Positions 10,446 to 57,056 of a stretch of 64,000 bases of DNA are shown here, in pieces. Each line of letters opens with the position of its first letter. Within the stretch, counting starts at the first letter, position 1. The position numbers and the translations under genes are program-made. Location of the stretch: the IMG/VR virus record IMGVR_UViG_3300027759_006101, positions 62,001 through 126,000 of that record, one strand, 5' to 3'. Below the pieces are notes generated by a model. The model had not been told where the DNA came from. It worked only from the letters and a program-made list of their open reading frames with translations, and searched no databases.

Positions 10446-10482
10446 AGGATTATATATTGTAAATAGTAAAATGTAAATAGTA
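10446..10482 (+). promoter_or_regulatory. Candidate phage late-type promoter: AGGA-N10-TAAATA plus tandem TGTAAATAGTA
   Basis: AGGA at 10446-49, TAAATA at 10460-65. TGTAAATAGTA occurs at 10458-68 and 10472-82, and also at 24-34 upstream of the first ORF. Confidence 0.4.
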
Positions 10483-10823
10483 TGTGGTACAAATCTGCTC
10501 AAATGACCTTTATGCAATCCCCTGAAACAAATGAGGAATGGTTAAGCAGACATAAGGTTGAAAAAGATGGCGATAAATATGTTTTTTATCACGGGTCTAG
10601 AATAAAATTTACTGAATTAAGAGCAGGCTCATTACTTGCTACATCCCCTCAAGAAGCTGCAGATTTTGGCGATACAAACTTTTTCAACGATAGAAGAAAA
10701 ACTTTAATCATCTACAAAGTTTTAGTTTCTCCCGATGAAATAATCCCAGGCTTTTGGGCAAAAGTTAAAAATAATCATCCTGTAGAAATTTACTATAAAT
10801 TATCAAGAAAAAGTACATCATAG
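10482..10823 (+). CDS. Small protein with ADP-ribosyltransferase-like motifs and an MWY tag
   Basis: Starts MWYKSAQ. YVFYHGS...F...LATSPQEAADF...IYKV resembles the H-G-[ST] / S-T-x-x-x-x-A ART pattern. Confidence 0.4.
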   Translation: MWYKSAQMTFMQSPETNEEWLSRHKVEKDGDKYVFYHGSRIKFTELRAGSLLATSPQEAADFGDTNFFNDRRKTLIIYKVLVSPDEIIPGFWAKVKNNHPVEIYYKLSRKSTS

Positions 10824-10845
10824 TTCACAATAAAGAGAAAAATAA

Positions 10846-12630
10846 ATGTGGTATTCTAAAACAATTTTAGCAGGAATTGAAGATGCGATTGAGGCCTTAA
10901 AAACAAAAGGCGTAAATGAAGAGATAATTAATTTTGTAACCAATCTTCCTGATGATAAAAAAGGTAAAGCTATTGGTGCGTTGAATCAAAATCCTTCTAT
11001 GATGATTGATGATTTGAAAAGTTTATTTCAATCCGGTTATAAGCCCTCAAGTCAAGAAAAGCAACTTGTTAAAGATTATGACCCAAGATTTCAAAGTTGG
11101 GCTTTGTATCAATATAAACTTTTGAGAGCTAATAAACTTACAGACGATCCTAATGACGACAGATGGGAATACAAGCAACCACTATCTGGCTATGCTGGAA
11201 TTAAAGACGATTTAGATGAAATTCACGACTTCTTTAGAGCACACACTTTAGACAATCCTAACTATAATCTTGGAACAAAATCATTCCAAGAAGCTTATGA
11301 TGACTCTGTTGAATGGCACAATGCTATGACAAAAAGAGGATCTGGAAAATTCTATTTACCATTTAAGAGAGATGAATCTGGAAATATAGTTGATGAAAAG
11401 ATTGTTCATAGATACGAAGATGGGTCTATGATGGTCAGAATAGACGATCCTAATGATTTAGATGTCGAAGGCAACTTTATGCATCACTGTGTAGGTTCAT
11501 ATGCAGATAGTGTAAAGTATGGAGACTGTACTATTTATTCCTTGAGAAATAAATATAATCTTCCTCAAGTCACAATTGAAGTAGACAAAAGTGGTGCAGT
11601 AAAACAAATCAAGGGACCAAGTAATAAATCTGTTGAAGATGATGAACAAGTAGAAAAAATTAAAGAATTTTTCGAAGGCAATGACAGTATCAAAAAAGAA
11701 TCTGGAGAAGGAATTGCCCATCAAAGAGCCAGAGATTGGTATCCTGCAGAAACTTATTGGGAAACAGGTCCAAAAGAAATTGGATATTCAATACACGAGT
11801 TTTCTTATGGTCCTTACTTAGCTGATTATGGTGATGGGTACGACAATACTCAATTTTCTCGTTTTGGTATTGGACCGACTGAATTTGACCAAGATGGATT
11901 TGGGAGAAAAAATCTTGAAAATGTTAATATGGATGAGTTAGTCAAAGAAACAACAGAAACGCTTGATAAGGGCTTAAGAGAGAAATACGAGTTAGATGAT
12001 TATAACTTTGAGAGATTAGCAGATATTATAGCAGAAGTTGGATATAATAAACTTGATTTAATGATTGATGATGTCTATGAATCAGAAGAAGATTTTTACA
12101 AGCAACATTCATATTATGTCCATAGATACGAAAATTACGAAGACTATAAAAAACAAAAAGCCCAACAAATACTAAGAAATAATCCATTGTTAGACTTAGT
12201 GTTTAATTTTGCAGAATCATTCAATCAGTTTTCAGAAAGTGTTAGAAATCCATATGACGATAAATATGAGCGTTTTGAAGATGAGAATGAATATGCAAAA
12301 AAAGCATTTGCGAAAATGCAAGATTCTGAATTTAGATTAAAAACAGAAATTGCTAAACAAGTTTATAATAACTATAGAGACAATCCAATAGTACAAAAAT
12401 TTCAAAATAAATTTGGAATGATATTTACTTTACCGGATACTACAGACATTCCTGAGACATACAAAGCACCAATGTCACTATTGACTAATACATACGAAGC
12501 ACCAACTCAACTAAGATTCCAAGATCTTCCAGAAGGTGGATCATTCAATTTAGCAAAGCATAGAAAAAATCAACAACAGAATCTTGAAGATGATAATTTA
12601 AAAATTCCTTTTGAAGATGATTTTGAATAA
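10846..12630 (+). CDS. PcfJ-like domain protein with MWY tag
   Basis: DLDVEGNFMHHCVGSY...IYSLRN....QVTIEV....VKQIKGPSN matches the PcfJ C-terminal pattern. Starts MWYSKTILA. Confidence 0.65.
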   Translation: MWYSKTILAGIEDAIEALKTKGVNEEIINFVTNLPDDKKGKAIGALNQNPSMMIDDLKSLFQSGYKPSSQEKQLVKDYDPRFQSWALYQYKLLRANKLTDDPNDDRWEYKQPLSGYAGIKDDLDEIHDFFRAHTLDNPNYNLGTKSFQEAYDDSVEWHNAMTKRGSGKFYLPFKRDESGNIVDEKIVHRYEDGSMMVRIDDPNDLDVEGNFMHHCVGSYADSVKYGDCTIYSLRNKYNLPQVTIEVDKSGAVKQIKGPSNKSVEDDEQVEKIKEFFEGNDSIKKESGEGIAHQRARDWYPAETYWETGPKEIGYSIHEFSYGPYLADYGDGYDNTQFSRFGIGPTEFDQDGFGRKNLENVNMDELVKETTETLDKGLREKYELDDYNFERLADIIAEVGYNKLDLMIDDVYESEEDFYKQHSYYVHRYENYEDYKKQKAQQILRNNPLLDLVFNFAESFNQFSESVRNPYDDKYERFEDENEYAKKAFAKMQDSEFRLKTEIAKQVYNNYRDNPIVQKFQNKFGMIFTLPDTTDIPETYKAPMSLLTNTYEAPTQLRFQDLPEGGSFNLAKHRKNQQQNLEDDNLKIPFEDDFE

Positions 12631-12636
12631 ATAAAA

Positions 12637-15492
12637 TTAAGTCTTTTTTCTTATCATATAGGTTAGTTTATCTGCTAACCTATATTCTTTTTTAAAATCT
12701 AGTTTTTGAGCAATTTTTAGCATAGATTTAACAGAAGCTAATACATCTTCATCATCTTCATCATCTTCATCATCATATTCATCTTCATCTTCTTCATCAT
12801 CTTCATCATCTTCATCATCTTCATCATCTTCAATGAGGTTTTGTTGATTTTGTGCTTGTGGTTGATATGGCCTGTTATATTGTTCTTGTCTATCTAATTG
12901 AAATTGTCTATATTCTTCCAATTTTTCTCTTGAAATATTTTGGAATAATTCTGGGTTTTGTTGTTTAAATTGAGGTGTAGTATTCATCAAAGGAATATAT
13001 TCTTTGAATAAATGTGGTTTTTGATTTGCAAAAATAGAAATCATACCAGGAGACAAATACTGTCGTGATGATTGTAAGATTTTGATAAAAGTTTGGTCCG
13101 AAAGTTTATTCAAAACCTCTGGATACCAAGAGATTAATGTTTCAAATTTACTCAAATCCCAAAAACTACTACTTAATTTTTCCAAAAGCTCAAATAATAA
13201 ATTTTCATCATTGTTATTACTAATTAAATTAACAATAAAAGTATTTGGCTTAAGAATTACAATACTTCTCCAAGCTTGACCAGAGTCTAAATATTCTCTT
13301 ATATTCTTAAAATATTTTTCATATTCATTAACATTTGTACGATCTAGCACAAAAGTCATCACGTCTTTACGTGCGTGTGACTTTACAATATTTACAAATT
13401 CATCAGAAGAAGATACTTCTTTTGGAAGATAATCAAAAAACATTGATAATCGTTGATATTGTTTGTCAGAATCTTCATCAACTTCATCTTCATCGTAGTT
13501 ATCATCATCTTCGTCACCTATAGGATGTAAAAGATGAATTTTTTTGAAAACACTACCAACTAATTTATCAAAATATTCGATTGATGTTTTCCAGAATTCA
13601 ATATTATTCTTATCATTAGCATTGACATCTGCATAATCATCCATCAAATAAATAATTCTTGTCAAATTATCCAAAATATTTCCAGGTTGAGATGGTGGAA
13701 GATTTTGATAATCTTTATAATCAAGATAATTTGCTTTATCTACTGCTTTGTAAACTATAAATTCAGGATCGTCCTTAAATTTATCAGGAACAATTTTCCA
13801 TAAATCCGACCATTTAGAAAGCTCATTAACATTAAAGAGCATGTCTATATTATATTTTTCATTTCTTGCTCTTTCTAATAATGGTGCTATTGCTTCTGGA
13901 ATTTGCAATAACAATCTTGTATTTTCTAAAGTTGGGTATTTTTTGTATACGCTTTCTATTCCTTTGATAATAGCTAACTTGTTTACAAATTCATCATTGA
14001 AATCTATTTCGGCATTATTATCAGTGTTTTTGAGTCCAATTTGAGGGAGAGCTATAGACCAGTTTTGAGGAAAATTTCTGAATTGCCCCCCTTTTGAAGA
14101 TCTATCTAAAATCTTTTGCTTTACTTCTTCATTATTAGTGTCAATATATTCGAGGAATGCAAAATTAGTATTTGCACCTTGTTCAACACCAGCAAGTTGT
14201 TGTTTTAAATAAGAATTTAGCAATTGTCTGTTTTTGCTAATTCTATCAGTTTGATTTTTTGGAAGAGTCAAACCAGTATTTACATATTGAACAAGAATAT
14301 TGTTTCCACCAGGAGTATCGAAAAGATAATTGAAAATTCTGTCAGGCAAAATCCAACCTGTTCCAATAAATTTAGACAAATATGTTTTTGCATCATCTGT
14401 CTCAACTATAATTTTTGAATACACTTCCTTAGAAGGATCATTGCCAAAAGGAATTTTAGAGACTATACGTTCTTCAGGTAAAATTAATGGATGATAACCA
14501 CGGACTTCATTTACAAAAGGAATAAATTTTCCTCTTTCTTGTAAAAAATATGCGTTATTTTCTTCAGGTGAAAATTTAATTTCAAATTTTCCCTTATCCC
14601 ACATTCTCAAATCTTCTTCAGTAAAGGGACTTTCACGTTTACCGTAAGCATAAGATTTTACATAATGAGATAATTCAGATATCAATCGCTCCTCTGGAGA
14701 TATGGGTTTGTTTTTTAAGATCTTTTCTTCTTTGCCAGTTTCAGGATTAATTGTTCGAGCGTCAATATTTACGCCTTTGCTCTTCAAATATTTAAGATAT
14801 GTTGGAATGTCTCTTCCGGTAATTGTTCGACCTTTGTACTCAAAAGAAATATCTTCAGTTAATTGTGGACCTGTTCTGTTAACTGTATCAGTGATTTTAA
14901 TATCTTTTGAATTATATTGCAATGCTACTTTTCTTACGTTAGATGTAGGAGGATTTTCATCCCAAACAATAAAAAATGTAGCAGCTTGATTACTTCTATA
15001 ACTTTGCCACATATTATTGGGGCCTTTGTAAGCTATACACCAAGAAGTATCAGCAGCTAAATCTTTGCTGTCCTGTGCTTTTTCTACCTTAAATATTTGT
15101 ATACCATCACCAGTCAAGACAGGAGTATGTTCCGAAATATCTGCTTCAGGTTGTACTTCTTGCTTTTTGACTATTGGGAATTTGCCGTGAACAAAATCTA
15201 TTAGCTCTTCTAAATCATTTAATTGATTATCATTTATAACAACAAAACTTTTAGATACTTTGATATTGGCTGGATTTAATTTTTTAATATTAATATATTC
15301 AGTAAGATGGCTAACAATATCATTAATAGCAAATTCATCAGAATCTCTTGCTAACATCCAAGCAGCAATAGGTTTAAAGACAGAACTATAATTATTTACA
15401 ATTTCTTTATAGCTGTTATAATCTTTTCCAACAGACTTGAAAATTGAAATAAATAATTCTTTATTTGCTATTACTATACGATTATTAAACAT
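12637..15492 (-). CDS. Large orphan protein, paralog of 15485-18511, with C-terminal acidic tract and helical-hairpin tag
   Basis: Shared block T[SR]WCI[AG]YKGPNNMWQSYR...FF.V.D.NPPT.N.RKVAL and NPETG.E.ILKNKP. Ends KIAQKLDFKKEYRLADKLT. Confidence 0.7.
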   Translation of the reverse strand: MFNNRIVIANKELFISIFKSVGKDYNSYKEIVNNYSSVFKPIAAWMLARDSDEFAINDIVSHLTEYINIKKLNPANIKVSKSFVVINDNQLNDLEELIDFVHGKFPIVKKQEVQPEADISEHTPVLTGDGIQIFKVEKAQDSKDLAADTSWCIAYKGPNNMWQSYRSNQAATFFIVWDENPPTSNVRKVALQYNSKDIKITDTVNRTGPQLTEDISFEYKGRTITGRDIPTYLKYLKSKGVNIDARTINPETGKEEKILKNKPISPEERLISELSHYVKSYAYGKRESPFTEEDLRMWDKGKFEIKFSPEENNAYFLQERGKFIPFVNEVRGYHPLILPEERIVSKIPFGNDPSKEVYSKIIVETDDAKTYLSKFIGTGWILPDRIFNYLFDTPGGNNILVQYVNTGLTLPKNQTDRISKNRQLLNSYLKQQLAGVEQGANTNFAFLEYIDTNNEEVKQKILDRSSKGGQFRNFPQNWSIALPQIGLKNTDNNAEIDFNDEFVNKLAIIKGIESVYKKYPTLENTRLLLQIPEAIAPLLERARNEKYNIDMLFNVNELSKWSDLWKIVPDKFKDDPEFIVYKAVDKANYLDYKDYQNLPPSQPGNILDNLTRIIYLMDDYADVNANDKNNIEFWKTSIEYFDKLVGSVFKKIHLLHPIGDEDDDNYDEDEVDEDSDKQYQRLSMFFDYLPKEVSSSDEFVNIVKSHARKDVMTFVLDRTNVNEYEKYFKNIREYLDSGQAWRSIVILKPNTFIVNLISNNNDENLLFELLEKLSSSFWDLSKFETLISWYPEVLNKLSDQTFIKILQSSRQYLSPGMISIFANQKPHLFKEYIPLMNTTPQFKQQNPELFQNISREKLEEYRQFQLDRQEQYNRPYQPQAQNQQNLIEDDEDDEDDEDDEEDEDEYDDEDDEDDEDVLASVKSMLKIAQKLDFKKEYRLADKLTYMIRKKT
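12746..12832 (-). repeat. Low-complexity GAT/GAA repeat encoding a poly-D/E tract
   Basis: TCATCTTCA-type iterations on the + strand. Encodes EDDEDDEDDEDDEEDEDEYDDEDDEDDED. Confidence 0.85.
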
Positions 15493-18400
15493 TGTATTTT
15501 CTCAATATATTTGTAAACTTATCTGCTAACTTGTATTGATAATTAAAATCTAATTTCTGTGCTATTTTCACCATTGATTTTACAAAGGCAGTAATAGGTT
15601 CTTCTTCTTCATCTTCTTCAGTTTCTTCTGACGCAAATGGATCAGGTAATTCTTCTTGTGTCCCAGGCGGTGTAGGTCTTTTGCCTTTCATCACTTTGCC
15701 AGTTTCTTCATCAAAATATCCAGTGCCATATTTTGATTTTCTTTCATATGCAAGAATTCTTGGAGCAAGGTTAGGATACATATGAACTAAAGCTGCCCTT
15801 ATTTCTGGCAATATATCCACATAAACATCTCTCTCTAAAATTCTCGTTTCAAAATATTTAGGATAATTTCTTAATAAATGCAATTGATGATTTAAATTTG
15901 GACGATTTCTAAAATAACTAAATATTCCTAAATTATAAAAATTTGGATCTTCTTTTACTTCTGGATAATGATGTGTATATATATCCAAAAATTCTAACAT
16001 AATATCTGGTGTAAAGTTGTTAAATGAATCAATTTCTTCATCACTAAATTTTCTTTTTTCAAGTATTTTTGAGAGGAATTCAAATGCATAACTTCTACCA
16101 CGATATAATACTCTGTAAAATTCAGATCTTACATTTCTTTCACCATCTAGAAATTGATTTATGTAGTCTTCATATAGCCAAGGTGTTTTTTCAATGTCTA
16201 TATTAGACATAAAATTCTTAGCAGAAATGCTGTTCATTCTTCTCTGCAAAAATTCTTTAATTTCAGGATCTTCTAAAAATTCTTGTGGAATAAACTTTAA
16301 AATGTTTGCAAAATCATTTTCACCAAAATTAAGTTCACTACCTATCCAATCAGCAAAATGATCTATATTCTTAAAGAAATTTTTCCAAAAATTTATATCT
16401 TGTATTGCATTTTGAAATTCTTGGATTGCATCTCTGAAATTTTCTTTTGCTTCATCACTCATCTCTAATTCTTCAAACTTCTTAAATAATTTGCCATCAT
16501 TATAAATAGCCCATAATAAAGTTTGATTTGCATTATTAGGAACAATTTCTTCTGGTCTATCTTTGTATGCGTAGTGTGCGTCTTTTAAGATTGTTTGTTC
16601 GTGTTCTTTAAGATCAAATGCAAAATTTATGGTTGGATTATCACTCCAATCAGAATGGTAACTTTCAGTAAATTCGTCATAATTATTAAAAGAAAATTCA
16701 CGCAAAACATCTACATTTTTAATTTGAGAAATTAACGAAAGATCAAATGGATCGTTAGAATTGTAATATTTAACAATTTTTTCGGAAGGTTTTGGACATA
16801 ATATTGAATACTTTACTTCTTCCAATACCCCAAGTTCTTTTGCTTTTTCAAAATCTTCTGCATTGAAACCAGTTGCCATTGCCACTTCTTTGATAAGTGA
16901 TTTATCCCCTGATTGCAATACGACATTTTTCAAATCTTGTTTTGGAAAAGCCGAAGTAAAATCTACTAAATCTTTATCTGTCAATCTATTTTTTGCATAT
17001 AATAAATATAATTCAGGAAATTTAGGATCTTCGAAAATAAAATTTCGTATACCATTTGGAACAAAAGTTTTTACAGTGCTAATATATTTTATCAACAAAT
17101 CTCTGTCGTTTAAATCCAACAATAAATCGGCATCAGCAGTTTCGGCGTATGTTGAACCTGATTGCAAATAGTCTTTTTCAATCAAAGTTTCAAGATAAAT
17201 TCTCAATAAATCTGGTTTTTTTCTTAAGTCTTGTCTAGCAACTTCATTTATACCGCCCTGTTTTTCAATTAATTGTTTAAATAAATCTTTTCTATTTAAG
17301 TTTATTAAATCAATTTGCATAAGAGGGCTAAATCTTCTACCAGCTATAATTTGACTTCTTAAGTATGAAGTAAGTAAATTTTTGTTATTTCTAAAAAATT
17401 GATATTGCGTTTCAGAAAGTTGCAAACCAGTGTTGACATATTTCATCAACAAATCTTCACCACCAACACTTCTAGATAAATATTCTAAAACTTCATCTTT
17501 TACACGTTTGCCTAAACCCATCCATCTCGAAGTATAGAATTTAGCATCAGGGTTATTAAGGATGTACGCAATACCAGATCTATCTGAAATCTCTTCTATA
17601 ATATCTAAACTATTTTTATCTATTCTTTTTATGTCACTATCTTCGCCATTGACTTTAGATTTTCCAGATTGCCATAAAAGAATATCTTCCACACCCAAAG
17701 CAGCTATATAATTGAATGTGCCATTTTGTAATCTTTCTTCTGTAGTTTTGGGTTTGTTCTTGAGAATTAATTCTTCTTGACCAGTTTCGGGATTTTGTCT
17801 TGTTGCCTGTAAATTAATTCCCTTACCAGTCAAGTATTCAGAATATTTATCCCAATCCCATCCATTTGAAAGTTGATGTCCTGTCATATTTGGAATGTCT
17901 GTTAATAAAACATTACCTGAAGCAAAATCAAGAGCAACTTTTCGTTGATTTTCTGTAGGAGGATTATTATCAAAAACTACAAAAAAAGAAGCATCGTGCG
18001 AATCTCTATAAGATTGCCACATATTATTTGGGCCTTTATAGCCGATACACCATCTTGTATCATCACCAACTAATCTTCTACCATCGTTGGCATCATTTAT
18101 CTCAAATATCTTAATGGAATTATCTTTATTTGCTACAACAGGAACATCTTCAATTTCAGTATTTTCAGCCTGTTTTTCAGCTTGCAAAATAGGAAATTGA
18201 GCGTGGATATATTCTGTTAGTTTAATTGCATCATCAAAAACTTTATCGTTTATTTTGACAGCTTTTGCGCCAACTGAATATTTAGTAATTCTTCTTGAGT
18301 CAATATATTTTTGTATAGCTTCAATATATTCATTTGGTTCAATATTACGGGCCAATAACCAAGCAGCAAATACTTGATACTTTTGATCATATTGCTTTAC

Positions 18401-18511
18401 TGTTTCTCTTAAGTCTTGATAATATTCTGCATCTTTGCCCAAATGATTACAAATACCTTGAATATCTTCTTTTATGCCAGCTGTAACAATCCTGAGACTA
18501 TACCTTTTCAT
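15485..18511 (-). CDS. Large orphan protein, paralog of 12637-15492, with C-terminal helical-hairpin tag
   Basis: 1008 aa. N-terminal ~270 aa aligns by eye with its neighbour. Ends KIAQKLDFNYQYKLADKFT. Confidence 0.7.
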   Translation of the reverse strand: MKRYSLRIVTAGIKEDIQGICNHLGKDAEYYQDLRETVKQYDQKYQVFAAWLLARNIEPNEYIEAIQKYIDSRRITKYSVGAKAVKINDKVFDDAIKLTEYIHAQFPILQAEKQAENTEIEDVPVVANKDNSIKIFEINDANDGRRLVGDDTRWCIGYKGPNNMWQSYRDSHDASFFVVFDNNPPTENQRKVALDFASGNVLLTDIPNMTGHQLSNGWDWDKYSEYLTGKGINLQATRQNPETGQEELILKNKPKTTEERLQNGTFNYIAALGVEDILLWQSGKSKVNGEDSDIKRIDKNSLDIIEEISDRSGIAYILNNPDAKFYTSRWMGLGKRVKDEVLEYLSRSVGGEDLLMKYVNTGLQLSETQYQFFRNNKNLLTSYLRSQIIAGRRFSPLMQIDLINLNRKDLFKQLIEKQGGINEVARQDLRKKPDLLRIYLETLIEKDYLQSGSTYAETADADLLLDLNDRDLLIKYISTVKTFVPNGIRNFIFEDPKFPELYLLYAKNRLTDKDLVDFTSAFPKQDLKNVVLQSGDKSLIKEVAMATGFNAEDFEKAKELGVLEEVKYSILCPKPSEKIVKYYNSNDPFDLSLISQIKNVDVLREFSFNNYDEFTESYHSDWSDNPTINFAFDLKEHEQTILKDAHYAYKDRPEEIVPNNANQTLLWAIYNDGKLFKKFEELEMSDEAKENFRDAIQEFQNAIQDINFWKNFFKNIDHFADWIGSELNFGENDFANILKFIPQEFLEDPEIKEFLQRRMNSISAKNFMSNIDIEKTPWLYEDYINQFLDGERNVRSEFYRVLYRGRSYAFEFLSKILEKRKFSDEEIDSFNNFTPDIMLEFLDIYTHHYPEVKEDPNFYNLGIFSYFRNRPNLNHQLHLLRNYPKYFETRILERDVYVDILPEIRAALVHMYPNLAPRILAYERKSKYGTGYFDEETGKVMKGKRPTPPGTQEELPDPFASEETEEDEEEEPITAFVKSMVKIAQKLDFNYQYKLADKFTNILRKYNV

Positions 18512-18598: not shown

Positions 18599-19075
18599 AT
18601 GTGGTACAGAACAGCGCAATCAACTTACGAAATTCATCCAAAGGAAGATCAAGCCAGAAAATACTATGGTATTACTACAAATGCATACAAAGCTGGCTAT
18701 ATATTAAGAGATGGAAAATTTCTTGATTATTCTGAAGGGCAACCTGAAAGAACTTTAGACCATAGAGATATACAAAATATTATGGATGATCCTGAAGAAT
18801 CTAAAGGTGATAGATATTCTGATTATGTTGAACCATTTCTCAATCTAACAGGTGCAATTAGAGCTTCTTATCAAAATGGTGAATGGAGTGTTGACTTTAA
18901 TACAATTCCCACAAGCAATCAAATCAGTGAAATACTAAAATGGGTCATTCCAGGCAAATATTTCCATTATGATATAGAACCGCTTGGAATTAAAAGTTCT
19001 ATAGAAAATGCTAATAAAAGAAAAGTTGAGAATAAGCTTGAGGAAATAAGAAATCTTTTATCAGGTGTAATGTAA
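18599..19075 (+). CDS. Hypothetical protein with MWY tag and a GYILxDG...DHRxI domain
   Basis: Starts MWYRTAQ. YGITT....AGYILRDGKFLDYS......DHRDI...GAIR. Confidence 0.55.
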   Translation: MWYRTAQSTYEIHPKEDQARKYYGITTNAYKAGYILRDGKFLDYSEGQPERTLDHRDIQNIMDDPEESKGDRYSDYVEPFLNLTGAIRASYQNGEWSVDFNTIPTSNQISEILKWVIPGKYFHYDIEPLGIKSSIENANKRKVENKLEEIRNLLSGVM

Positions 19076-46724: not shown

Positions 46725-49271
46725 ATGTTTAATTTCAAAAATTTCAAAACTGCCGCTGATTTAACAAAGAAAATCAATCCTCAAGACATTCCAGGAGCCA
46801 CTATTGAACAAAAGGCTGCCTATATTTCTGAGTACTTAGATAAAGAAATTGGCGAAAGATTAAAGTCTGGTGAAATAGACATTGATACCGCTTACAAACT
46901 TTTATCAGAGACTAAAGTTACTGGTGTTGCTGCAGACTTAGATTTTCTTGAAAAATATCGTTTCAACATTGCTCAATTACTTCAACAAGCAAGTTTTATA
47001 AAATCTGAAATGAGTGACACAGGATTAAATGTTGAACAAATTTCACAGTTGATTCTTAAGAAACTTCTGGAAAGAGTAAATCAAGTTTTTATTCCTGAAC
47101 TAGTTGAGCTTAACAGAACTGCTAAAAGGTCATCTGAAGAAGTTTTAAGACTGCTTTCAAACCTTACAACATACGAAGAGCCTGAACAAATCTCATCTAT
47201 CAAATTGTTTATTTCAAGAGAAATTGAACGTGAAATAAATGAAATAGTAAATGAATTCAAAGATATTAGAGAAAGAGCATTGAAGATTCGAGACTTCAAT
47301 GATTCCGATCTTTTGATTATGCTCACTCACACTCCCGTTGAATCTTTAAAAGTAATTTTTCCAGATAGAAGAAAAACAGGCGATACTCCATTACCGTCCA
47401 AATTTAATGATCCTGAAGTAGTAAGACAAGTAGAATTTGCCAACGATGAAGTTCAAAAGTTAGCAAGAAAAGTTACTTTAAAAGGCGATGCAGGATGGGC
47501 TAAAGTATTGGGTCTTTCTGAAAAATTACCTCAGGAAGAACTTGAAAAATGGAAGCGTTTGATTGAACATCCAATAAAGTTTAATCTTTATGAGATTGTA
47601 AAGAATGCTGGTTTGATGAGTGCTGGTTTAAGTGAAGACAGAACAGAAAAACCAGAAGCTGTAAGAAATGCAGGATTCAGAAATCCTGTGTTGAGAGAGA
47701 GATACTATTCTGTGTTTAGACCACAGTTAGATCCATCTACGGGTAGACCATTCTTATCAGAATCCGAAATGAGATATATGGATGAAAAATTTGGTGGTAA
47801 ATCTCCAAGTGAATTACCATTTGATATAGACGATAGATTAAACTTCATCAAAAGATCGCAGTCTGGTCTCAGAAATAAATATACCCTAGACAGACTGTAC
47901 GAATTTATTTCAGAAGGTTATGATGGGCAACAACTTAAGACCTTAGTCTTATCTAACAATATACCATTAGATCAAGCAGGATTGGCTATTCAGTTTTATT
48001 TTAGAGTAATTTGCAAAAGCGACAGAGACTTGTTCTTGAGAGACTTACGAACTTTGGGCCTTGAAGAACATTATGGCGCTTTGTCTGAAGTTGGATTAGA
48101 AGTAGACGAAAGTTATGAAGCTGTGAGATTAACTGTCAACTCCAATCAAGAATACAAAATAATCAAAGTTTTAAGAAATGAATTTGGCATTGATGCAGTA
48201 CCTTTTCCTGTTTTGATTCCTGTTCCTACTGACTGTCCAACAAATACTGAAAATTTTGACATCGACTTTATGATATTTGTAGATGTATTAGATTACATTG
48301 ACCCAGAAACATTTCAGCCAAAGATTACTCAAAAGGCAGTTTTTGTCGGAGAATATTTTGGCTTTAACAGTGACAAAGAAAAAGAGATAGTAGATAGGGG
48401 GCGTCCTTGGGTCACTCCTGAAGGAAAAGTTTTCACACCGGCACCTAAGATTAGTACAGTCACAGGAGAAGTCTTAAAAAGATATTCTCCATTAGAGCCT
48501 GGTAAAAAATCTAGAGAAGGCCATATTTACGACTTGAAGACTATGTGGAAAAAGTTTACTTATAACACAGTCTCTCACATAATGGGCGCAGATGCATTAT
48601 ATTTTGATGATGCTGACTTAAAAATTCCTTATAAGTCAATTGCTCAAAAGTTAGATGATAAGGACATTATTTACAATTATTCTGGCTGTTCAAATGCTAA
48701 TGACTTATGTAAGGCTAAAAAGATGATTGAAAACAGCACTGCATTTGAATTAAAAGAAAACTTAAATAATCCAGAATATCATCAAAGAAATGTTTATAAT
48801 GAAAAAAATAAATGTATTAGGCTTGTTGACAGTATTGTTATAAACTTCAAATTTCAAAAAGTATTGCGCAGAGTAAAAAAAGAATTTATTGGAAAAAGTG
48901 GATTTGATAGACAAACAATGTTCTTTCACAGAGAGTATATGGACTCTCTACGTAATAATGTTCAGAATGCGCTTAGAATATTAAGCAGTAATAAAGCTAG
49001 TATGCAAGAAAAACTTTCAGCTCAACAAGCCATAGAAAGAAATCAAGCTGAAATGAGAAGCTTAGAATATTCACCTCTTTATGCATTCAAACAAAGATAC
49101 GAAGAATTGCTAAAACAACCTGAAATTGCTGGAACTCTGAATCAATTAAATCAATTAAGAGAAGCAATTTTAAGTGAAGATGTAGAGCCAACTCTTAGCA
49201 ATGTTAGAGGATTGATGTTGCAAATTGATGAGGGAATTTTTGGTTTTGTGCCTAATCCTGAACAATCATAA
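46725..49271 (+). CDS. Large tagged orphan protein with a central PD-(D/E)XK-like nuclease pattern
   Basis: Starts MFNFKNFKTA. Internal NSNQEYKIIKVL....GI...IDFMI...VGEYFG...Y..K..WK..Y. Confidence 0.5.
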   Translation: MFNFKNFKTAADLTKKINPQDIPGATIEQKAAYISEYLDKEIGERLKSGEIDIDTAYKLLSETKVTGVAADLDFLEKYRFNIAQLLQQASFIKSEMSDTGLNVEQISQLILKKLLERVNQVFIPELVELNRTAKRSSEEVLRLLSNLTTYEEPEQISSIKLFISREIEREINEIVNEFKDIRERALKIRDFNDSDLLIMLTHTPVESLKVIFPDRRKTGDTPLPSKFNDPEVVRQVEFANDEVQKLARKVTLKGDAGWAKVLGLSEKLPQEELEKWKRLIEHPIKFNLYEIVKNAGLMSAGLSEDRTEKPEAVRNAGFRNPVLRERYYSVFRPQLDPSTGRPFLSESEMRYMDEKFGGKSPSELPFDIDDRLNFIKRSQSGLRNKYTLDRLYEFISEGYDGQQLKTLVLSNNIPLDQAGLAIQFYFRVICKSDRDLFLRDLRTLGLEEHYGALSEVGLEVDESYEAVRLTVNSNQEYKIIKVLRNEFGIDAVPFPVLIPVPTDCPTNTENFDIDFMIFVDVLDYIDPETFQPKITQKAVFVGEYFGFNSDKEKEIVDRGRPWVTPEGKVFTPAPKISTVTGEVLKRYSPLEPGKKSREGHIYDLKTMWKKFTYNTVSHIMGADALYFDDADLKIPYKSIAQKLDDKDIIYNYSGCSNANDLCKAKKMIENSTAFELKENLNNPEYHQRNVYNEKNKCIRLVDSIVINFKFQKVLRRVKKEFIGKSGFDRQTMFFHREYMDSLRNNVQNALRILSSNKASMQEKLSAQQAIERNQAEMRSLEYSPLYAFKQRYEELLKQPEIAGTLNQLNQLREAILSEDVEPTLSNVRGLMLQIDEGIFGFVPNPEQS

Positions 49272-51156: not shown

Positions 51157-51657
51157 ATGGACGAAATATTAAGATTTACAATTCCTGGCAATCCTGTTAC
51201 TAAAAAAACCCATCAAAGAATTATGCGTGTTGGTGGATATCCTCGCATTTTTCCCTCAAAACAATACGAAGAGTATGAGAAATATTGTAGATCTTATTGT
51301 TTGGATGTTTGGAAAAATCAAGGCAAAGAACCTATTAAATATGGTGTTGCAATTCAAATTAAAGTTTGGCTTTCTCGATGGATTCTTCCAGATCACGTTG
51401 GTATTTTGCAGTCTATTGGTGACATTCTAGAAAAATGGAGTGTTATTGATAATGATAAATATATTCATTGGACTGACACTGATGCAAATAATGTCCGTGA
51501 GCATTGGTTCCAAGGTATAGATAAGGAAAATCCAAGAATAGAAATAACAATCTTTCGCTTTAAACATCTTTACGAAGACTACACCCAGGAAAAAGATGAA
51601 AAAGAAGCTGCAAAGTTAGAAAGAAAAAAAATTAGAGAAAGCAAAAAAACTGGATAA
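51157..51657 (+). CDS. rusA: RusA-like Holliday junction resolvase
   Basis: FTIPGNPVTKK, PD......IGDIL....IDND..I, DKENPRIEITI. Confidence 0.75.
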   Translation: MDEILRFTIPGNPVTKKTHQRIMRVGGYPRIFPSKQYEEYEKYCRSYCLDVWKNQGKEPIKYGVAIQIKVWLSRWILPDHVGILQSIGDILEKWSVIDNDKYIHWTDTDANNVREHWFQGIDKENPRIEITIFRFKHLYEDYTQEKDEKEAAKLERKKIRESKKTG

Positions 51658-51662
51658 TAAAA

Positions 51663-51935
51663 ATGATTATTATAGTAAATTTCGGAGTCAATGAAGACTT
51701 TTCCGAAACACCTCTATTAGATAATTTGTGGCAAACACTTTCAGTATGTAAATATTTTGAATCTTTGCCTGAACTTTGGAAATTAAATGATTTATATTCT
51801 GATAGTGTCTGTAAATATTTAGATATTAGAAAAACTCAATTAATTTACACAAGGCTTTGGGGAATTGATATCGATCAATCTAATAATGTTGGTCTAATTG
51901 CAAAAGAAAAATTCTATCCATTAATTAAGACATAA
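51663..51935 (+). CDS. Hypothetical protein
   Basis: 90-aa ORF followed by a terminator. Confidence 0.5.
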   Translation: MIIIVNFGVNEDFSETPLLDNLWQTLSVCKYFESLPELWKLNDLYSDSVCKYLDIRKTQLIYTRLWGIDIDQSNNVGLIAKEKFYPLIKT

Positions 51936-51964
51936 AAAAAAGCAGACAAAAGTCTGCTTTTTTT
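51934..51964. terminator. Bidirectional intrinsic terminator
   Basis: A8-GCAGAC-AAAA-GTCTGC-T7 between convergent genes. Confidence 0.9.
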
Positions 51965-51979
51965 ATTTAGAAAAGAACC

Positions 51980-52312
51980 TTATGCATTTGGAACAATGAA
52001 GTGAGGCTCAGAATCTACAATTGTAAACTCTCCGGCAATTCCAAGAGGAGTTACAATTTCTCGCATTCGCTCTTGGAGAGCTGATGAATTCTCATTCAAA
52101 GCTTCATTAAGAGCATTGAGTTGTTGCTGAGCTTGTTGCAACTGGGATGCATATTGCTGAGCAACATTGACAAATTCAAGAACATCAGCCTTCTGAGCCT
52201 TAAGCTCAAGCAATGACTGGCGCATAGAAACCAACTCTAAATACTCATCGTGAGTAATTGTAGGGCGCTCTTCGCTTACTTCGACTTCTGAGTCAACTGC
52301 ATTTTCATCCAT
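51980..52312 (-). CDS. Coiled-coil hypothetical protein
   Basis: 110 aa with a Q/L heptad run. Confidence 0.55.
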   Translation of the reverse strand: MDENAVDSEVEVSEERPTITHDEYLELVSMRQSLLELKAQKADVLEFVNVAQQYASQLQQAQQQLNALNEALNENSSALQERMREIVTPLGIAGEFTIVDSEPHFIVPNA

Positions 52313-52437
52313 TTGTTATATAACCTCGAGATCAATTGATCAAATTTATGTTACCTGATTTTTTTGTAAATGTAAACTTGTTTTTTGTATTTTTTTCAGG
52401 TATGATCGACATGTATGTTTATACAGAAAGTTGAAAT

Positions 52438-53127
52438 ATGAAAACAATTTTGCTTAGCCCGTCCGATTTAGCGTTCTTATATGAAGAAAGTCACTGGGGG
52501 TTTTATCAAAAGTACACTTCAGGTATCAAAAGACCTCCAGTCATTATACCCAAAGTTTTTACTACTATAGATGTTCTCACTAAGTTGACATTCTTGAACA
52601 AGAGTATGGTCAATTTTGACTCATCATTTCCTGATGCTTTACTTGTAGACGCTGACAAATGGGTTAAGAGCAAGTCTATTAGCAATCCAGATTATCCTGA
52701 TATCGAAATTTGTGTCAGGGGTAAAATTGATGGTTTATTGCGCTATTCTGATATGTCTCACAGTGTCATCGATTTCAAAACCTGTGAGATTAATGAGATA
52801 ACATTAGCCAAATACATCAGGCAATTGTCTTGTTATGCATACGCTTTGAGATACCCAAACTCTTCAATAGATTATTCAGTTTCTGTGAATGAAAAAATTG
52901 GATTGTTTGTTTTTCAACCCAATTCCTTTGATGTGACTCAAGAAGGAGCTGCGAATTTAAGTGGAGACTTCAAATATATCGAATACACCTGGGATGAAGA
53001 TGATTTTGTAGAATACATTAGAAATAAAATTATCCCTTTACTGGCTGGAAAAGAACCTGAGCCTAAAGAAAGTGATCCTTGTTGGGCTTATCTCAAGCAA
53101 TTTGGATTTGCTTACGAGGAAGAATAA
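52438..53127 (+). CDS. PD-(D/E)XK (RecB-like) nuclease
   Basis: RGKIDGLL...VIDFKT...QLSCYAYAL. Confidence 0.8.
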   Translation: MKTILLSPSDLAFLYEESHWGFYQKYTSGIKRPPVIIPKVFTTIDVLTKLTFLNKSMVNFDSSFPDALLVDADKWVKSKSISNPDYPDIEICVRGKIDGLLRYSDMSHSVIDFKTCEINEITLAKYIRQLSCYAYALRYPNSSIDYSVSVNEKIGLFVFQPNSFDVTQEGAANLSGDFKYIEYTWDEDDFVEYIRNKIIPLLAGKEPEPKESDPCWAYLKQFGFAYEEE

Positions 53128-53132
53128 TTTAG

Positions 53133-53166
53133 AAAAGAGAATTGAAACTATATCAATTCTCTTTTT
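53133..53166. terminator. Intrinsic terminator-like hairpin
   Basis: AAAAGAGAATTGA-N7-TCAATTCTCTTTT-T after the nuclease stop. Confidence 0.75.
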
Positions 53167-53183
53167 GTTATAATTTATTTAGT

Positions 53184-54053
53184 ATGAAAACGACAACCAA
53201 AATTACATATAACCACAAACTTGCTCAATCTAAAGAAAGTTGGGAAACAAATTTCTTAAGTAAAATCAATAACGCTAATTCACTGTTATATTTAGCAGCT
53301 ATCAAATCAAATAATTATGCTAAGATAGATGATAAATATTACACAGAAGAAAACAAGCCAAAAATTTTATCAACTTTGGATGGCATTGTTAGCGCACCTT
53401 ACAACCAAAGATTTCACAAAGTATTTGAAACATTTTTAGCAGAAGCTAAAGCTAAACTTGATAGTAAAATTGCTGGAAATGCATCTGCAACTCAGTCAAC
53501 AAAACAGCAGCCAGCTCAACAACAGCAACAACCAGGTGTCGCAGTAAGTCAAACCCCAGATGGCAAAACTAAGTTTACTTCTAGTGTTCAAACATACGAA
53601 GGCGATCAAATAAGAGATATCTTTGCTAAAGCTCAACTTATTTTAGATAACGATCCTCAGCAGTTTAGACAGCTTTGGCCAGGATTGAGGAAACAGGTTG
53701 TTGCTCTTTGGCAGTATACTGACGATAATGAAAAAATTGAGTTTAATTCACAATTAAGAAATTTTGATCTAAAAATAAACTTGATGAATAATCCTCAAGG
53801 CGGAGACACTACATCAAGAGGTACTTTCTTCGCATACAGGTTTGAAGATCTAGTCCCTCAATTATATAACGCTCTTAGAATGAATGATGTCACGCAGGCT
53901 AATGATGTTGTCTCTAAAATTCAAGTATTGCGTGATAAAGACCCTCGTTATGAGCCATATATTACTGAAAGCAGAAAGTTGAATTTAGATATTTCCAGGT
54001 ATAATGGAAGAAATATAGGCACTGATGCTGCTAAAGTTAACACTATCAGATAA
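53184..54053 (+). CDS. Hypothetical protein with tag-like N-terminus
   Basis: The track start lies inside the terminator. ATG at 53184 (TAGT-ATG context) gives MKTTTKITYNHKLAQ. Confidence 0.55.
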   Translation: MKTTTKITYNHKLAQSKESWETNFLSKINNANSLLYLAAIKSNNYAKIDDKYYTEENKPKILSTLDGIVSAPYNQRFHKVFETFLAEAKAKLDSKIAGNASATQSTKQQPAQQQQQPGVAVSQTPDGKTKFTSSVQTYEGDQIRDIFAKAQLILDNDPQQFRQLWPGLRKQVVALWQYTDDNEKIEFNSQLRNFDLKINLMNNPQGGDTTSRGTFFAYRFEDLVPQLYNALRMNDVTQANDVVSKIQVLRDKDPRYEPYITESRKLNLDISRYNGRNIGTDAAKVNTIR

Positions 54054-54241
54054 TGCCTAAGCCAGTTGACGATTTAGTCAAAACTTTATTAGACGACCCA
54101 GATTTTTACCCCAAAAAAGGTACAGATGATAGGGAATCTACCGCTTGGGCAATTGCTTATTCACAATATAATAAAAATAAGAAAAGAAAAAAGAAGTCTT
54201 TTAATATGAAAGACTATCGTACAGCACAAAAACCAGACTAA
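54053..54241 (+). CDS. Small basic protein, ChaB-like AWAIA motif
   Basis: MPKPVDDLV...RESTAWAIAYSQ. Ends SFNMKDYRTAQKPD. Confidence 0.45.
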   Translation: MPKPVDDLVKTLLDDPDFYPKKGTDDRESTAWAIAYSQYNKNKKRKKKSFNMKDYRTAQKPD

Positions 54242-54253
54242 GTCTGGTTTTTT
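54228..54253. terminator. Intrinsic terminator
   Basis: AAAAACCAGAC-TAA-GTCTGGTTTTTT, with the stop codon in the loop. Confidence 0.8.
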
Positions 54254-54268
54254 ATTTATAATACCCTT

Positions 54269-54976
54269 ATGAGTACACTTTCAATTATTATGCTTACTAA
54301 TACTGTCAATGAAGATATCTTCAAGATGACTCAATACGCTTTAGATTCCTTGAATCAATCAATTGGTTCAGAAAATTTCAACGTAGTTTTAGTAGAGTCT
54401 AACAAAGAACATAATTGGAATTATAATCACGTTAATTTTTATTTGAAGCCTACCGTTGATTTTAATTACAATACCTATCTCAATATTGCTATAGAAAACT
54501 GTGATTCAGACTATATATGTATTTCAAATAATGACGTAAATTTTCACAAAGACTGGTGGCAAAAATTAGAAAAAGCTATGATAAGCAAAAATCTTGATAC
54601 AGCTTCTCCTAGATCGCCAACCGAACAAAAAGGCATCGTCCCTCACGCAGAAATCAAACACAGATATACGCCTGATTGTGTAATTAGGGAAGGATTTGAA
54701 TTAATTGTAAATTTTTGTGGTTGGTGCTGGGTGATGAAAAGGGAAGTAAAAGACTGGCTCTTTCCTTTAGATGAACAATTCTCATTTTTCTTTCAAGATA
54801 ACGATGTTATTATGAGATTAAAACAAAAGGGCTGCAAGCACGGACTAGTAGGTGGTTCTAAAGTTAATCATTTTGGTCAATCTTCTCACGGAATTTTTAA
54901 ATCTAGGGAAGACTGGTACAAAAATACATTTGGATTGGAAAAAGCATTTATAGAAAAATGGAGGAACTATTTATAG
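54269..54976 (+). CDS. Glycosyltransferase, family 2-like (GT-A)
   Basis: LSIIMLT, FNYNTYLNIAI, ICISNNDV (DXD-like), LDEQFSFFFQDND, VNHFG. Confidence 0.8.
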   Translation: MSTLSIIMLTNTVNEDIFKMTQYALDSLNQSIGSENFNVVLVESNKEHNWNYNHVNFYLKPTVDFNYNTYLNIAIENCDSDYICISNNDVNFHKDWWQKLEKAMISKNLDTASPRSPTEQKGIVPHAEIKHRYTPDCVIREGFELIVNFCGWCWVMKREVKDWLFPLDEQFSFFFQDNDVIMRLKQKGCKHGLVGGSKVNHFGQSSHGIFKSREDWYKNTFGLEKAFIEKWRNYL

Positions 54977-54990
54977 TTCCTCCATTTTGT

Positions 54991-55920
54991 TTACTTTGTG
55001 TGCAGTTTGATTTCTTTAAGGAAATGCTCGGAATTCTTGACTGTAGTATTATATCTAAGTAAATGTTCCATCATTTCATTTTGGAAATACTCGTAATTCT
55101 TATCAAGCCACTTTGGATCGTTCTTCTCGAAAAATGCAACCTTTGTCCATAGTGCTTTTGGAGCTCGCATCATTACATATCTTGGGCAGTGTGGAATCTC
55201 CTCAAAAAGAGGAACGCATCCATTAGCCATAATTTCATAATGACGCATACAGTCCCAACCAGCCTTCTTAGTTGTACGAGCGTATTTTGAAAATTTATAA
55301 TCCTGGTAGTACTCTACTTCTGTATTGTAAACATAAGTATTTTTGTTTCTTGGATCAATATATGCAATTCTTCTCTCTTTCTTTGCACCACTAGAGACTT
55401 TTCCAGTAGGCATTGCAAATTGAATTGGAAGAACATTCTTCATATGCTCTTGCAAATGAGCTTGCTTTTGATCTGGATACAACTCTCTCTTAAAATAAAT
55501 TGTCTCATCCTTGATTCTATCGTGGAATAAGTTTGTATCTTCACCATCAACATAAATGATTTGCTTCTTGTCATAAGTATCTAAAACAAGCTGCAAATGA
55601 TCCTGACATCGCCAAATGCTTCCATAAACGACAAGATCAAAAAATTTATTTTTAATCTTTCTGATGATATCTTCTCTATCAGTATTGTCTGAGGTGAGGT
55701 TTCTGCAAATAGTAAAACCCTTACCATATTCTGTTGCAAATTGATCATCTGAATAGTCAGAATACAAATGGTGTCGTTTATTACAATCTACAACATCGTC
55801 GCCATGCAATTCCTTAAGGCCCAAAAGCAAACAGTCATCTTGATAGTCTGTAAGCCAAGGGAATTGTGGAGACCTTTGATTGCCAGAGATATATAAAATT
55901 TTCATAAAGATATTGTACAC
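54991..55920 (-). CDS. Putative glycosyltransferase (GT-B-like C-terminus)
   Basis: IIYVDGED, YFKREL, KKAGWDCMRHYEIMANGCVP. Confidence 0.6.
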   Translation of the reverse strand: MYNIFMKILYISGNQRSPQFPWLTDYQDDCLLLGLKELHGDDVVDCNKRHHLYSDYSDDQFATEYGKGFTICRNLTSDNTDREDIIRKIKNKFFDLVVYGSIWRCQDHLQLVLDTYDKKQIIYVDGEDTNLFHDRIKDETIYFKRELYPDQKQAHLQEHMKNVLPIQFAMPTGKVSSGAKKERRIAYIDPRNKNTYVYNTEVEYYQDYKFSKYARTTKKAGWDCMRHYEIMANGCVPLFEEIPHCPRYVMMRAPKALWTKVAFFEKNDPKWLDKNYEYFQNEMMEHLLRYNTTVKNSEHFLKEIKLHTK

Positions 55921-55932
55921 TCCAAAGCAAAA

Positions 55933-56487
55933 TTAAGCTCTTACTTCAATTGTACATTTTATATCAACTTCGTAATCTATGCAAACAAGAATCAATCTTT
56001 CTAAAATTTTTAAGTTGTTTATCATTACAAGATTAGTCGGATCAGGATTCGATATAGAAATTAACTCTAATGCGTTTTGTATTTTTTTACTCATCACAAA
56101 CGGATTATAAGATTTATTTTTCATCAAATCTAATATAAACATCATTGGTAAAATATATTCAGATGAGATTTCTACTTTGTTTTTGGTGCTTGATAAATCG
56201 CAAGCAAAAATTTGAAATGAATAAGAAACTAACTCACTATCTTTGATTATATATTCCTTGCAGTATTCATGATCAAAATTTAACTCATATTCAAAATTAT
56301 TATCTTTCAATATACTAAGCCATTGTTCTAAAGTTCTTCGATTGTTTAATTCAATTAAATCTCCTAAAAGAGTTATCATAATTGAATTGTAATTAGGAGG
56401 AGAACTAATTTGGCCTTTCCATAAAATAAATTTTGGATCTACTTGAGTGACAGTATAAGGTTCAAAAATAAGTGAGGTGTAACTCAT
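55933..56487 (-). CDS. Hypothetical protein
   Basis: 184-aa ORF. Confidence 0.5.
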   Translation of the reverse strand: MSYTSLIFEPYTVTQVDPKFILWKGQISSPPNYNSIMITLLGDLIELNNRRTLEQWLSILKDNNFEYELNFDHEYCKEYIIKDSELVSYSFQIFACDLSSTKNKVEISSEYILPMMFILDLMKNKSYNPFVMSKKIQNALELISISNPDPTNLVMINNLKILERLILVCIDYEVDIKCTIEVRA

Positions 56488-56502
56488 ATATTTATTTTAC
56501 AT

Positions 56503-56967
56503 TTAAGAAATTATTTTTTCATAAGTCTCAAAAAATTCTTGAGCTGCTATCCTGTAAACTTCTTGATATGAAGGAGACGGAGAAACTATATAATCCCCAG
56601 TTTTTAGGGTCATTAATCTGCCCCATTTAGCTACAAATTCTAATTCTGAGCCATAGTATCTACAAGCTATAATTTTGCCCTTAGGAATATATACTGCGCC
56701 ATTTTCATAAAAGTAGAAAAATTTGTATCTACTAAAAAGCATATCACAAGGAACAATATATTCTTCTTGACATTCAGTATGCAAATTCTTAACTACAAAA
56801 TCCCCTTCTTTTGCATAATTTGTAGTTTCCAGGCCATCAGCAGTCCAAGTCTCTATATATTGATTTAAAGTGGCAGGATAGGCATAAATTAAACAAGTCT
56901 TGTAATATTCTTGCCCATTATCTCTTATTTCAGGAAAAAAATAAGAGTATGCTTCCTGTTGTGTCAT
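56503..56967 (-). CDS. PGDYG-family-like protein (two repeats)
   Basis: AKEGDFVV...Y.V....F..RY and WG..M.LKTGDYIV...Y.I....F.ETY repeats. Confidence 0.6.
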   Translation of the reverse strand: MTQQEAYSYFFPEIRDNGQEYYKTCLIYAYPATLNQYIETWTADGLETTNYAKEGDFVVKNLHTECQEEYIVPCDMLFSRYKFFYFYENGAVYIPKGKIIACRYYGSELEFVAKWGRLMTLKTGDYIVSPSPSYQEVYRIAAQEFFETYEKIIS

Positions 56968-57056
56968 CAAAGATCGCTTATTTTTGATTCAAGAGAATAT
57001 AAACTTGTTTCAGCTTCATCTTTGGAAATTGCTAATTTTATTCTTGAGTACCACAT
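56967..57056 (-). CDS. 29-aa micro-ORF with MWY tag (not in the ORF track)
   Basis: Hand translation MWYSRIKLAISKDEAETSLYSLESKISDL*. The TGA overlaps the ATG of the downstream gene. Confidence 0.55.
   Translation of the reverse strand: MWYSRIKLAISKDEAETSLYSLESKISDL

Follow-up and report, generated by a model that had tools for sequence, protein, structure and literature searches.

In encapsulins and bacterial microcompartments, unrelated enzymes carry short N- or C-terminal peptides or amphipathic helices (cargo-loading and encapsulation peptides, respectively) on flexible linkers and dock by them inside the shell, and the encapsulin shell itself has the HK97 fold. In phage T4, a capsid targeting sequence (CTS) of 10 residues suffices to bring foreign proteins into the head (PMC9026906), and in phage P22 the C-terminal helix-turn-helix of the scaffolding protein (residues 268-303, 36 residues) is a coat-binding domain that encapsulates fused cargo (PMC9962691). 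For the domains of polyvalent proteins, packaging and injection have been predicted, the prototype being T4 Alt (Iyer et al. 2017, PMC5512222). Here we describe a peptide tag in an uncultured freshwater phage, in a window of 64,000 nucleotides that covers bases 62001-126000 of the 358,269-bp viral contig IMGVR_UViG_3300027759_006101 (coordinates below are those of the window unless a locus is named). The tag is modular, terminal and flexibly linked, comes in a short form of the MWYKxAQ type and a long form that is a helical hairpin, is strongly selected, and is found on effector-type proteins. In our preferred but tentative reading, which we hold at a little short of an even chance, it would be a docking tag that loads virion cargo through a receptor in the assembling head, much as the T4 CTS does.

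The nonamer ATGTGGTAY, which encodes Met-Trp-Tyr, occurs exactly four times on the two strands of the 64 kb, and all four occurrences are the first ATG of an open reading frame (ORF). With 71 proteins and frequencies of 1.14% for Trp and 4.37% for Tyr, 0.035 MWY starts are expected against the four observed (P(>=4) = 6e-8), which excludes chance and bears out an earlier note on this DNA that had called four such starts improbable. That note had also proposed a count of the motif in the first 15 residues against a background. Four proteins have the pattern aromatic-[KR]-x-[AS]-[QA] there, against a mean of 0.04 in random internal 15-mers from the same proteins (none of 3000 draws reached four), and a looser expression close to the note's own is found in seven against 0.31 (again 0/3000 draws). 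The nine N-terminal strings and both terminal echoes that it quoted all lie where it had placed them or directly beside.

The first MWY start, MWYKSAQ (10482..10502, + strand), opens a 113-amino-acid (aa) protein (10482-10823) with orthologues in L035 and L076 (L-numbers denote viral loci compared, P-numbers representatives matched by the hairpin profile described below); in a feature search this protein resembles a small ADP-ribosyltransferase (ART-like), which is a lead only. MWYSKTILAG (10846..10875, +) opens a 594-aa PcfJ-domain protein (10846-12630), MWYRTAQ (18599..18619, +) a 158-aa protein (18599-19075), and MWYSRIKLAI... (57056-57027, -) a mini-ORF of 29 aa (56967..57056) that is hardly more than a tag. 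Four further N termini in the window carry FN-type short tags, among them MFNNRIVIAN (15463..15492, -) on a 951-aa protein (12637-15492), kept in P0034, P0040 and P0057, MFNFKNFKTAA (46725..46757, +) on an 848-aa protein (46725-49271) and MYNNRNYKFSQ (57155..57187, +) on a 365-aa protein (57155-58252). A 1008-aa paralogue of the 951-aa protein (15485-18511, -) begins with the variant MKRYSLRIVTAG (18476..18511, -), and YNHKLAQ (53208..53228, +) is a possible short tag at residues 9-15 of a 289-aa protein (53184-54053). At the other end of proteins, the FN-type SFNMKDYRTAQ (54197..54229, +) stands four residues from the end of a 62-aa protein (54053-54241), and a degenerate SFNLAKHRKNQ (12541..12573, +) lies close to the C terminus of the PcfJ protein. 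YNHKLAQ and MYNNRNYKFSQ are among the weakest items, both without an orthologue for comparison, and a search of IMG/VR yielded no close relative of the 365-aa protein.

The window holds four hairpins, two of them at the N termini of a 207-aa protein (6538..6630 in 6007-6630, -; orthologue in L081) and a 465-aa protein (58255..58356 in 58255-59652, +), and two at the C termini of the 951-aa (12640..12744, -) and 1008-aa (15488..15595, -) paralogues, which thus bear both forms of the tag, as the earlier note had said. A gene cut by the window start (1..2334, +; ORF 43-2334, without a start) has a 904-aa orthologue (L081:1000-3714) that begins MWYSRIIESA, and is probably tagged as well, a fifth MWY gene whose start would fall beyond the window edge. 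Tags were counted on at least 13 of the window's roughly 71 genes, and the tagged genes are grouped in islands at 10482-19075 (five consecutive genes) and 46725-59652. The tag is similarly clustered elsewhere: a third island (L077) lies 10 kb past the window on the same contig, and in L084 eight of nine successive genes are tagged, three with MWY and five with the hairpin.

A scan of 2.9 million viral contigs (IMG/VR) for the codons of MWYKxAQ and MWYRxAQ returned 55 and 26 stretches respectively. Of these, about 45 and 18 prove to be genuine starts of ORFs, all on contigs of 27-44% GC and many on contigs of 250-480 kb; the remaining matches are short or internal, mostly on GC-rich contigs, as chance predicts. 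Across all loci, 131 of 146 ATGTGGTAY mark the start of an ORF; the 95 unique proteins that result fall into 30 BLAST clusters, and 54 tagged contexts are left after removal of near-duplicates. Unrelated phage loci with PcfJ served as a negative control: their 228 kb contained two ATGTGGTAY, in the same gene twice and 58 codons inside the ORF. The consensus over the 54 contexts is M, W, Y, K/R (83%), a mostly hydrophobic position, A (80%) and Q (56%), with no preference in the residues that follow Q.

Within this consensus the codons vary synonymously (TAT 32/TAC 22; GCT 24/GCA 15/GCC 3; CAA 25/CAG 5; AAA, AAG, AGA and CGA for the basic residue), and the 40 nt upstream of tagged genes hold less than 0.6 bit per position, so that selection acts on the peptide. 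An element of DNA or RNA (a promoter, a translation start context or a cassette recombination box), or an artefact of chance or common descent, is by the same evidence effectively refuted, and we give it next to no probability. The tagged genes do cluster, and in three genes of the window TAGT stands directly ahead of the ATG (10478-10481, 18595-18598 and 53180-53183) without a Shine-Dalgarno-like purine run, but the same peptide is also used at C termini and the roughly 30 families that carry it are unrelated apart from the tag. No conserved upstream motif was found over the 54 tagged genes, and in a promoter scan near the islands sites were no commoner than in shuffles.

The earlier note had taken the short peptide for a second tag that acts alongside the helical hairpin. 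Because orthologues swap the two forms at their N and C ends, the sequences instead identify it as the short form of the hairpin tag. Members of the 131/154-aa family have one of two starts: MWYR-x-AQ and then DMSVPFYRY, or a hairpin that closes helix 2 with [KR]-[FI]-AQ and continues with DMS[IV]P. At the opposite terminus, the 62-aa protein of the window ends SFNMKDYRTAQ-KPD, and its L029 orthologue ends in a 33-residue hairpin with the start SLNELNK and the finish FLKISQ. A common sequence of hairpin helix 1 is M-[FLI]-N-x-L-[KR]-x-A-[QSN], which is the FN-type short-tag pattern, and W-Y in place of two hydrophobics of this pattern yields MWY[KR]xAQ; the core common to both forms is hydrophobic-hydrophobic-[KR]-x-A-Q. 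Written as [FY]N-x-[KR]-x-[FY]-[KR]-x-[AS]-[QN], the FN-type pattern can be found at either end of a protein: it has six matches in 259,813 residues (ORFs of AT-rich loci), five at an extreme terminus (2 N, 3 C) and the sixth where orthologues end. The minimal unit is a two-turn amphipathic helix (two hydrophobic or aromatic residues, [KR], x, A, Q), and the long form a helix-turn-helix of about 33 residues in which helix 1 contains the unit and a second copy often closes helix 2.

The PcfJ family illustrates the use of both ends. Orthologues of the window protein (n = 11, about 60% identity) keep a MWY-x-RT[IV][LI]AA start, a paralogous clade starts MWYKLAQ, and in the regions flanking the orthologues each ATGTGGTAY is likewise an ORF start. 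A C-terminal FN-type motif is clearer in the PcfJ relatives of L084 and in one of L035, and by this comparison SFNLAKHRK of the window protein is a decayed copy of it. The family thus carries a MWY tag at the front and an FN-type tag at the rear.

The tag is predicted to be a free appendage on a flexible linker, outside the fold. M1, W2 and Y3 never change among members of the 158-aa family, even at 36% identity, and Q7 is followed by a variable, indel-rich linker. AlphaFold assigns residues 1-9 of the window member a predicted local distance difference test score (pLDDT) below 50 and the rest above 90; its domain has no match among solved structures. Residues 1-11 of the 1008-aa paralogue also score below 50, as a free N-terminal tag, and are followed in the model by an alpha/beta domain and then a long alpha-solenoid, from which a disordered acidic linker (948-973) leads to a helix-turn-helix (973-1005, with helices 973-989 and 993-1005). 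The 951-aa paralogue has about 45 nearly pure Asp/Glu residues directly ahead of its hairpin (12745-12880, -), a longer acidic linker than that of the 1008-aa protein, which AlphaFold models as disordered. The N termini of both large paralogues are kept across family members at 26-49% identity. Comparisons of the two gave weak alpha-solenoid resemblances only, and a likeness to PcfJ, apparent at first, failed confirmation.

This arrangement bears on a proposal of the earlier note, that the peptide is a leader cut after Ala by a prohead protease, like the substrates of T4 gp21 or phiKZ gp175; a cut after Gln may be considered with it. The conserved unit stops sharply at A-Q, the folded or variable part starts directly after, and the capsid targeting sequences of T4 act as targeting signals and are also cut by gp21, all of which would suit a cleaved leader. 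Cleavage after Ala is unsupported, since the conserved unit ends A-Q and the variable part begins after Q, and no residue is preferred beyond Q. N-terminal copies precede the rest of the protein, and a cut there would release the tag, but C-terminal copies (FNMKDYRTAQ-KPD; hairpins ending KISQ or KLAQ) end 0-3 residues from the stop, so that a cut would remove just those 0-3 residues. The motif is also unlike the [LI]xE and [SAG]xE sites known for such proteases (PMC9026906), and no protease was identified in the window or the examined parts of the contig; PF18894 (PhageMetallopep, 8405-8887), which is untagged, is the only peptidase-related family match in the window. We therefore think a general leader function distinctly unlikely, and cleavage of N-terminal copies possible.

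To survey the long form, a profile of 13 hairpins (alignment A2) was searched against 1.84 billion representative proteins at E<=1e-3, and 134 cluster representatives matched. Their 158 hairpin domains are N-terminal in 81 cases, C-terminal in 39 and internal in 38; most internal ones belong to proteins of 2-5 hairpins, which resemble fused tagged modules. The consensus is L-h-K-h-A-N-x-L-D-x-x-G-x-Y-K-E-A-D-x-h-D-x-h-h-x-K-h-A-Q (h, hydrophobic), and in alignment A2 an Ala and L-D in helix 1 and the A-D that opens helix 2 are near-invariant. The hairpin proteins sampled are all unnamed metagenomic proteins. None of the 13 hairpins matched Pfam, and the DNA-binding models SAP, HeH and Rho_N gave no match at E up to 10. 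A literature search for the tag and the hairpin gave irrelevant full-text hits for 'MWYK', and on the topics of cargo, targeting and propeptides the T4, P22, SPN3US and encapsulin systems only. The top profile match, P0025 (4827 aa, 170 bits), has no single stretch that passes; it looks like a long repetitive protein with many weak repeats of the type ...LADKF..., and a relation to the phage tag is improbable. Two hairpins and a conserved C-terminal block, ...VPGGSVAAQTP..., are combined in a widespread family (about 300-360 aa; P0055, P0072, P0078, P0082 and L086:10001-11017) that is a candidate hub or scaffold. A 452-kb contig carries one of its members, and the L086 member is encoded 9 kb upstream of the terminase large subunit.

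Many proteins have 2-5 hairpins, or one at each end, and could cross-link others, and a lone two-helix hairpin usually needs a partner. On these grounds the tag could serve assembly inside the cell, with hairpins pairing (for example as four-helix bundles) and short tags, which are similar to hairpin helix 1, docking onto them, in a non-covalent 'polyvalent' complex or condensate that is never packaged. Metabolic and DNA-binding proteins among those tagged would fit such an assembly. It leaves unexplained, however, the match to packaged polyvalent domains and a position beside the major head protein in L085, both described below, and is compatible with packaging of the whole assembly, so that it is only partly a rival. 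We consider an unpackaged complex unlikely, though it deserves more weight than the cleaved leader.

The case for docking in the head, which the earlier note had also suggested, is drawn from the repertoire of tagged proteins, from the T4 CTS and P22 hairpin analogies and from the context in L085. Among tagged proteins, Pfam recognises PcfJ, ART-PolyVal, InPase, NUDIX with HAD_SAK_2, Peptidase_M23, a kinase (AAA_33) and, weakly, GNAT. Giant PHROG profiles (1664, 2564 and 3925 positions) contain internal segments to which several free-standing tagged proteins align, and the 158-aa domain matches part of some uncharacterised phage proteins longer than 1000 aa (TM score 0.70, E 1e-7). Tagged proteins are mostly single-domain and of 100-650 aa, and thus lack the 2-15 domains per polypeptide by which polyvalent proteins are recognised; from their sequences we take them for an unbundled counterpart of the polyvalent proteins and not for members of that class. 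In L085, a 28.7-kb contig, four hairpin genes form one co-directional block that ends in the gene for the major head protein (phrog_2522, E 1e-71). A 631-aa protein of this contig had been guessed to be the portal; the guess was not confirmed (weak ART-like leads only), and we do not call it a portal.

From repertoire, analogy and context we infer the following course of head loading. The tags would bind one common receptor in the assembling head, be it the scaffold or core, the inner capsid surface or a portal-associated protein, and a large set of enzymes of host takeover and anti-defence would be loaded into the virion and delivered together with the DNA. In other phages these enzyme domains are joined in a single giant polyvalent protein. 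A bolder form of the proposal, possible but on the doubtful side, is a portable address system of uncultured giant phages, in which a helix unit of 6-7 residues and a bivalent hairpin would alone direct dozens of enzymes per genome into the capsid for co-injection, with a tag-and-receptor logic like that of encapsulins in place of covalent polyvalent proteins.

The same repertoire, rich in modifying enzymes (ART, GNAT, kinase, NUDIX), might alternatively be docked on a hub of the host, such as RNA polymerase, ribosome, nucleoid or membrane, and so be brought to their place of action; short terminal motifs are typical of hub binders, as in the tails that bind the sliding clamp or single-stranded DNA-binding protein. 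We judge this improbable: phages that carry the tag span 27-44% GC and probably differ in their hosts, and acidic or neutral hairpins speak against binding to membrane or DNA. A degron that times removal by an AAA+ protease would equally be short, at either terminus and on a flexible linker. A folded 33-residue hairpin able to replace the short tag is not degron-like, however, methionine aminopeptidase leaves Met-Trp unprocessed so that no N-degron arises, and the islands have no linked protease gene; this explanation we hold to be very improbable. A signal for import into a phage nucleus was also considered and seems unlikely, because replication enzymes are untagged and the window encodes sigma factors and not a multi-subunit polymerase of its own. 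None of the identifiable replication, nucleotide-metabolism or transcription genes of the window is headed by a MWY or FN tag, in agreement with the earlier note, which had found the motif missing from replication enzymes.

Several results weigh against the head-loading proposal. A 2-hydroxyacid dehydrogenase and DNA-binding proteins with HTH_58 or AP2 domains (AP2 in one hairpin protein) also carry tags and would be unexpected cargo, and the islands of the window also contain RusA, a glycosyltransferase and an exonuclease-like gene and lie within a replication region. No prohead protease, virion or head protein, scaffold or portal was identified in the window or the examined parts of the contig. 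The L085 context is a single case, and PHROG annotation of the L086 context was uninformative. The hairpin matched no solved structure in a comparison with PDB sequences, its net charge is inconsistent and not consistently basic, and the C terminus of P22 gp8 shows no similarity to the hairpin profile (hhalign probability 0.1%). By blastn and tblastn against 50,697 phage records, no cultured relative of the window DNA or of the tagged proteins turned up; the PcfJ domain alone matches Bacillus and Listeria phages, at less than 45% identity.

The 29-aa mini-ORF, whose stop shares bases with the ATG of the gene that follows (TGATG), could be either a remnant or a peptide that is all tag, acting as a competitor or adaptor. 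An origin as an assembly frameshift of that gene was rejected, since no indel was seen in three independent lake metagenomes, and a variant in which the stop is changed to Arg meets a second stop one codon on. In L029 the orthologous neighbour has no such mini-ORF upstream.

The window has a GC content of 32%, and many lake-water metagenomes of 2017-2025 contain sequence near-identical to it. Its genes include those for ribonucleotide reductase, RusA, a glycosyltransferase, a clamp-loader subunit (7354-8415, -), the beta sliding clamp (3879-5036, -), adenylosuccinate synthetase (purA, 4973-5968, -), two sigma-70-family factors (2302-2868 and 6634-7344, both -) and the alpha subunit of DNA polymerase III, the last assigned by ORF size and translation start only. 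The hairpin-tagged 207-aa gene (6007-6630) stands between purA and a sigma factor gene. A terminator-like hairpin with a strong 14-bp stem (19094-19125) separates the convergent genes for the 158-aa tagged protein and ribonucleotide reductase. A 1.4-kb gap amid minus-strand genes is spanned by a 511-aa ORF (26921-28456, +) that overlaps 26243-27043 at the start of the latter. This ORF, whose N terminus appears hydrophobic and of low complexity, may be a genuine gene or an antisense artefact. Two phage genes have an N terminus of the prepilin type (FTLIELLVVIAIIAIL...), L077:6402-7298 (-), which lies on the same contig as the window at about 142 kb, and L084:1-590 (-), which has Pfam matches to N_methyl and SBP_bac_10 (DUF1559). 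The DUF1559 family is common in Planctomycetota and Verrucomicrobiota, a possible clue to the host.

Proteins injected together with the DNA decide the first minutes of infection (anti-restriction, host shut-off, passage of the cell wall) and are invisible for uncultured phages. If docking in the head is the function of the tag, a list of tagged genes would be the injected 'first-strike' proteome of such phages, readable straight from sequence and metagenomes, and at least 13 tagged genes among about 71 would make a varied cargo plausible, as is known for phiKZ-like phages. The short form would moreover be a minimal natural peptide of seven residues for loading phage heads, useful for phage-based delivery, and would mean that a 33-residue docking hairpin can shrink to that length. 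The analysis unifies two earlier observations, the short tag and the hairpin, in one system and ties the polyvalent repertoire to a non-covalent alternative. Even without a capsid receptor, a tag common to about 30 families would offer a handle on a central hub of giant-phage biology.

Of the known systems, the CTS of T4 (IPI, IPII, IPIII and Alt) is similar in being a short N-terminal peptide on unrelated, fast-evolving proteins, with an ADP-ribosyltransferase among the cargo (PMC9026906; PMC5512222). The tag nevertheless has no sequence resemblance to MKTYQEFIAE, and its consensus M-W-Y-[KR]-x-A-Q has neither Glu nor the [LI]-x-E site of gp21; judged by sequence it is an analogue at most and no homologue. 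The T4 sequence is N-terminal only, is cut by gp21 after Glu and serves about four families, whereas the tag described here occurs at both termini, has a 33-residue hairpin form and is carried by dozens of families per genome. With the P22 scaffolding protein the hairpin shares the layout of a terminal two-helix hairpin with a short turn (here of about 35 residues, predicted) on a flexible tether, which in P22 keeps fused cargo at the inside of the procapsid. The P22 hairpin, however, is strongly basic and belongs to one scaffold protein, in contrast to the mixed or acidic hairpins here, which would serve a whole family of cargo proteins.

The shells of encapsulins and microcompartments are cellular compartments addressed by other motifs, for example the Gly/Leu-rich encapsulin peptides. 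The giant phages phiKZ, SPN3US and 201phi2-1 are similar in loading tens of head proteins from many paralogue families (PMC5694885, PMC7411985). Their propeptides are long and family-specific and are recognised by a protease site, [SAG]-x-E, instead of a portable tag in common. The polyvalent proteins (Iyer, Burroughs, Anand, de Souza, Aravind 2017) have the domain repertoire in common with the tagged proteins: ART-PolyVal, InPase, NUDIX, GNAT and peptidases, with PcfJ in related contexts. There, 2-15 domains are fused in one polypeptide, often with MuF or portal, whereas here there is one gene per domain and a common terminal tag.

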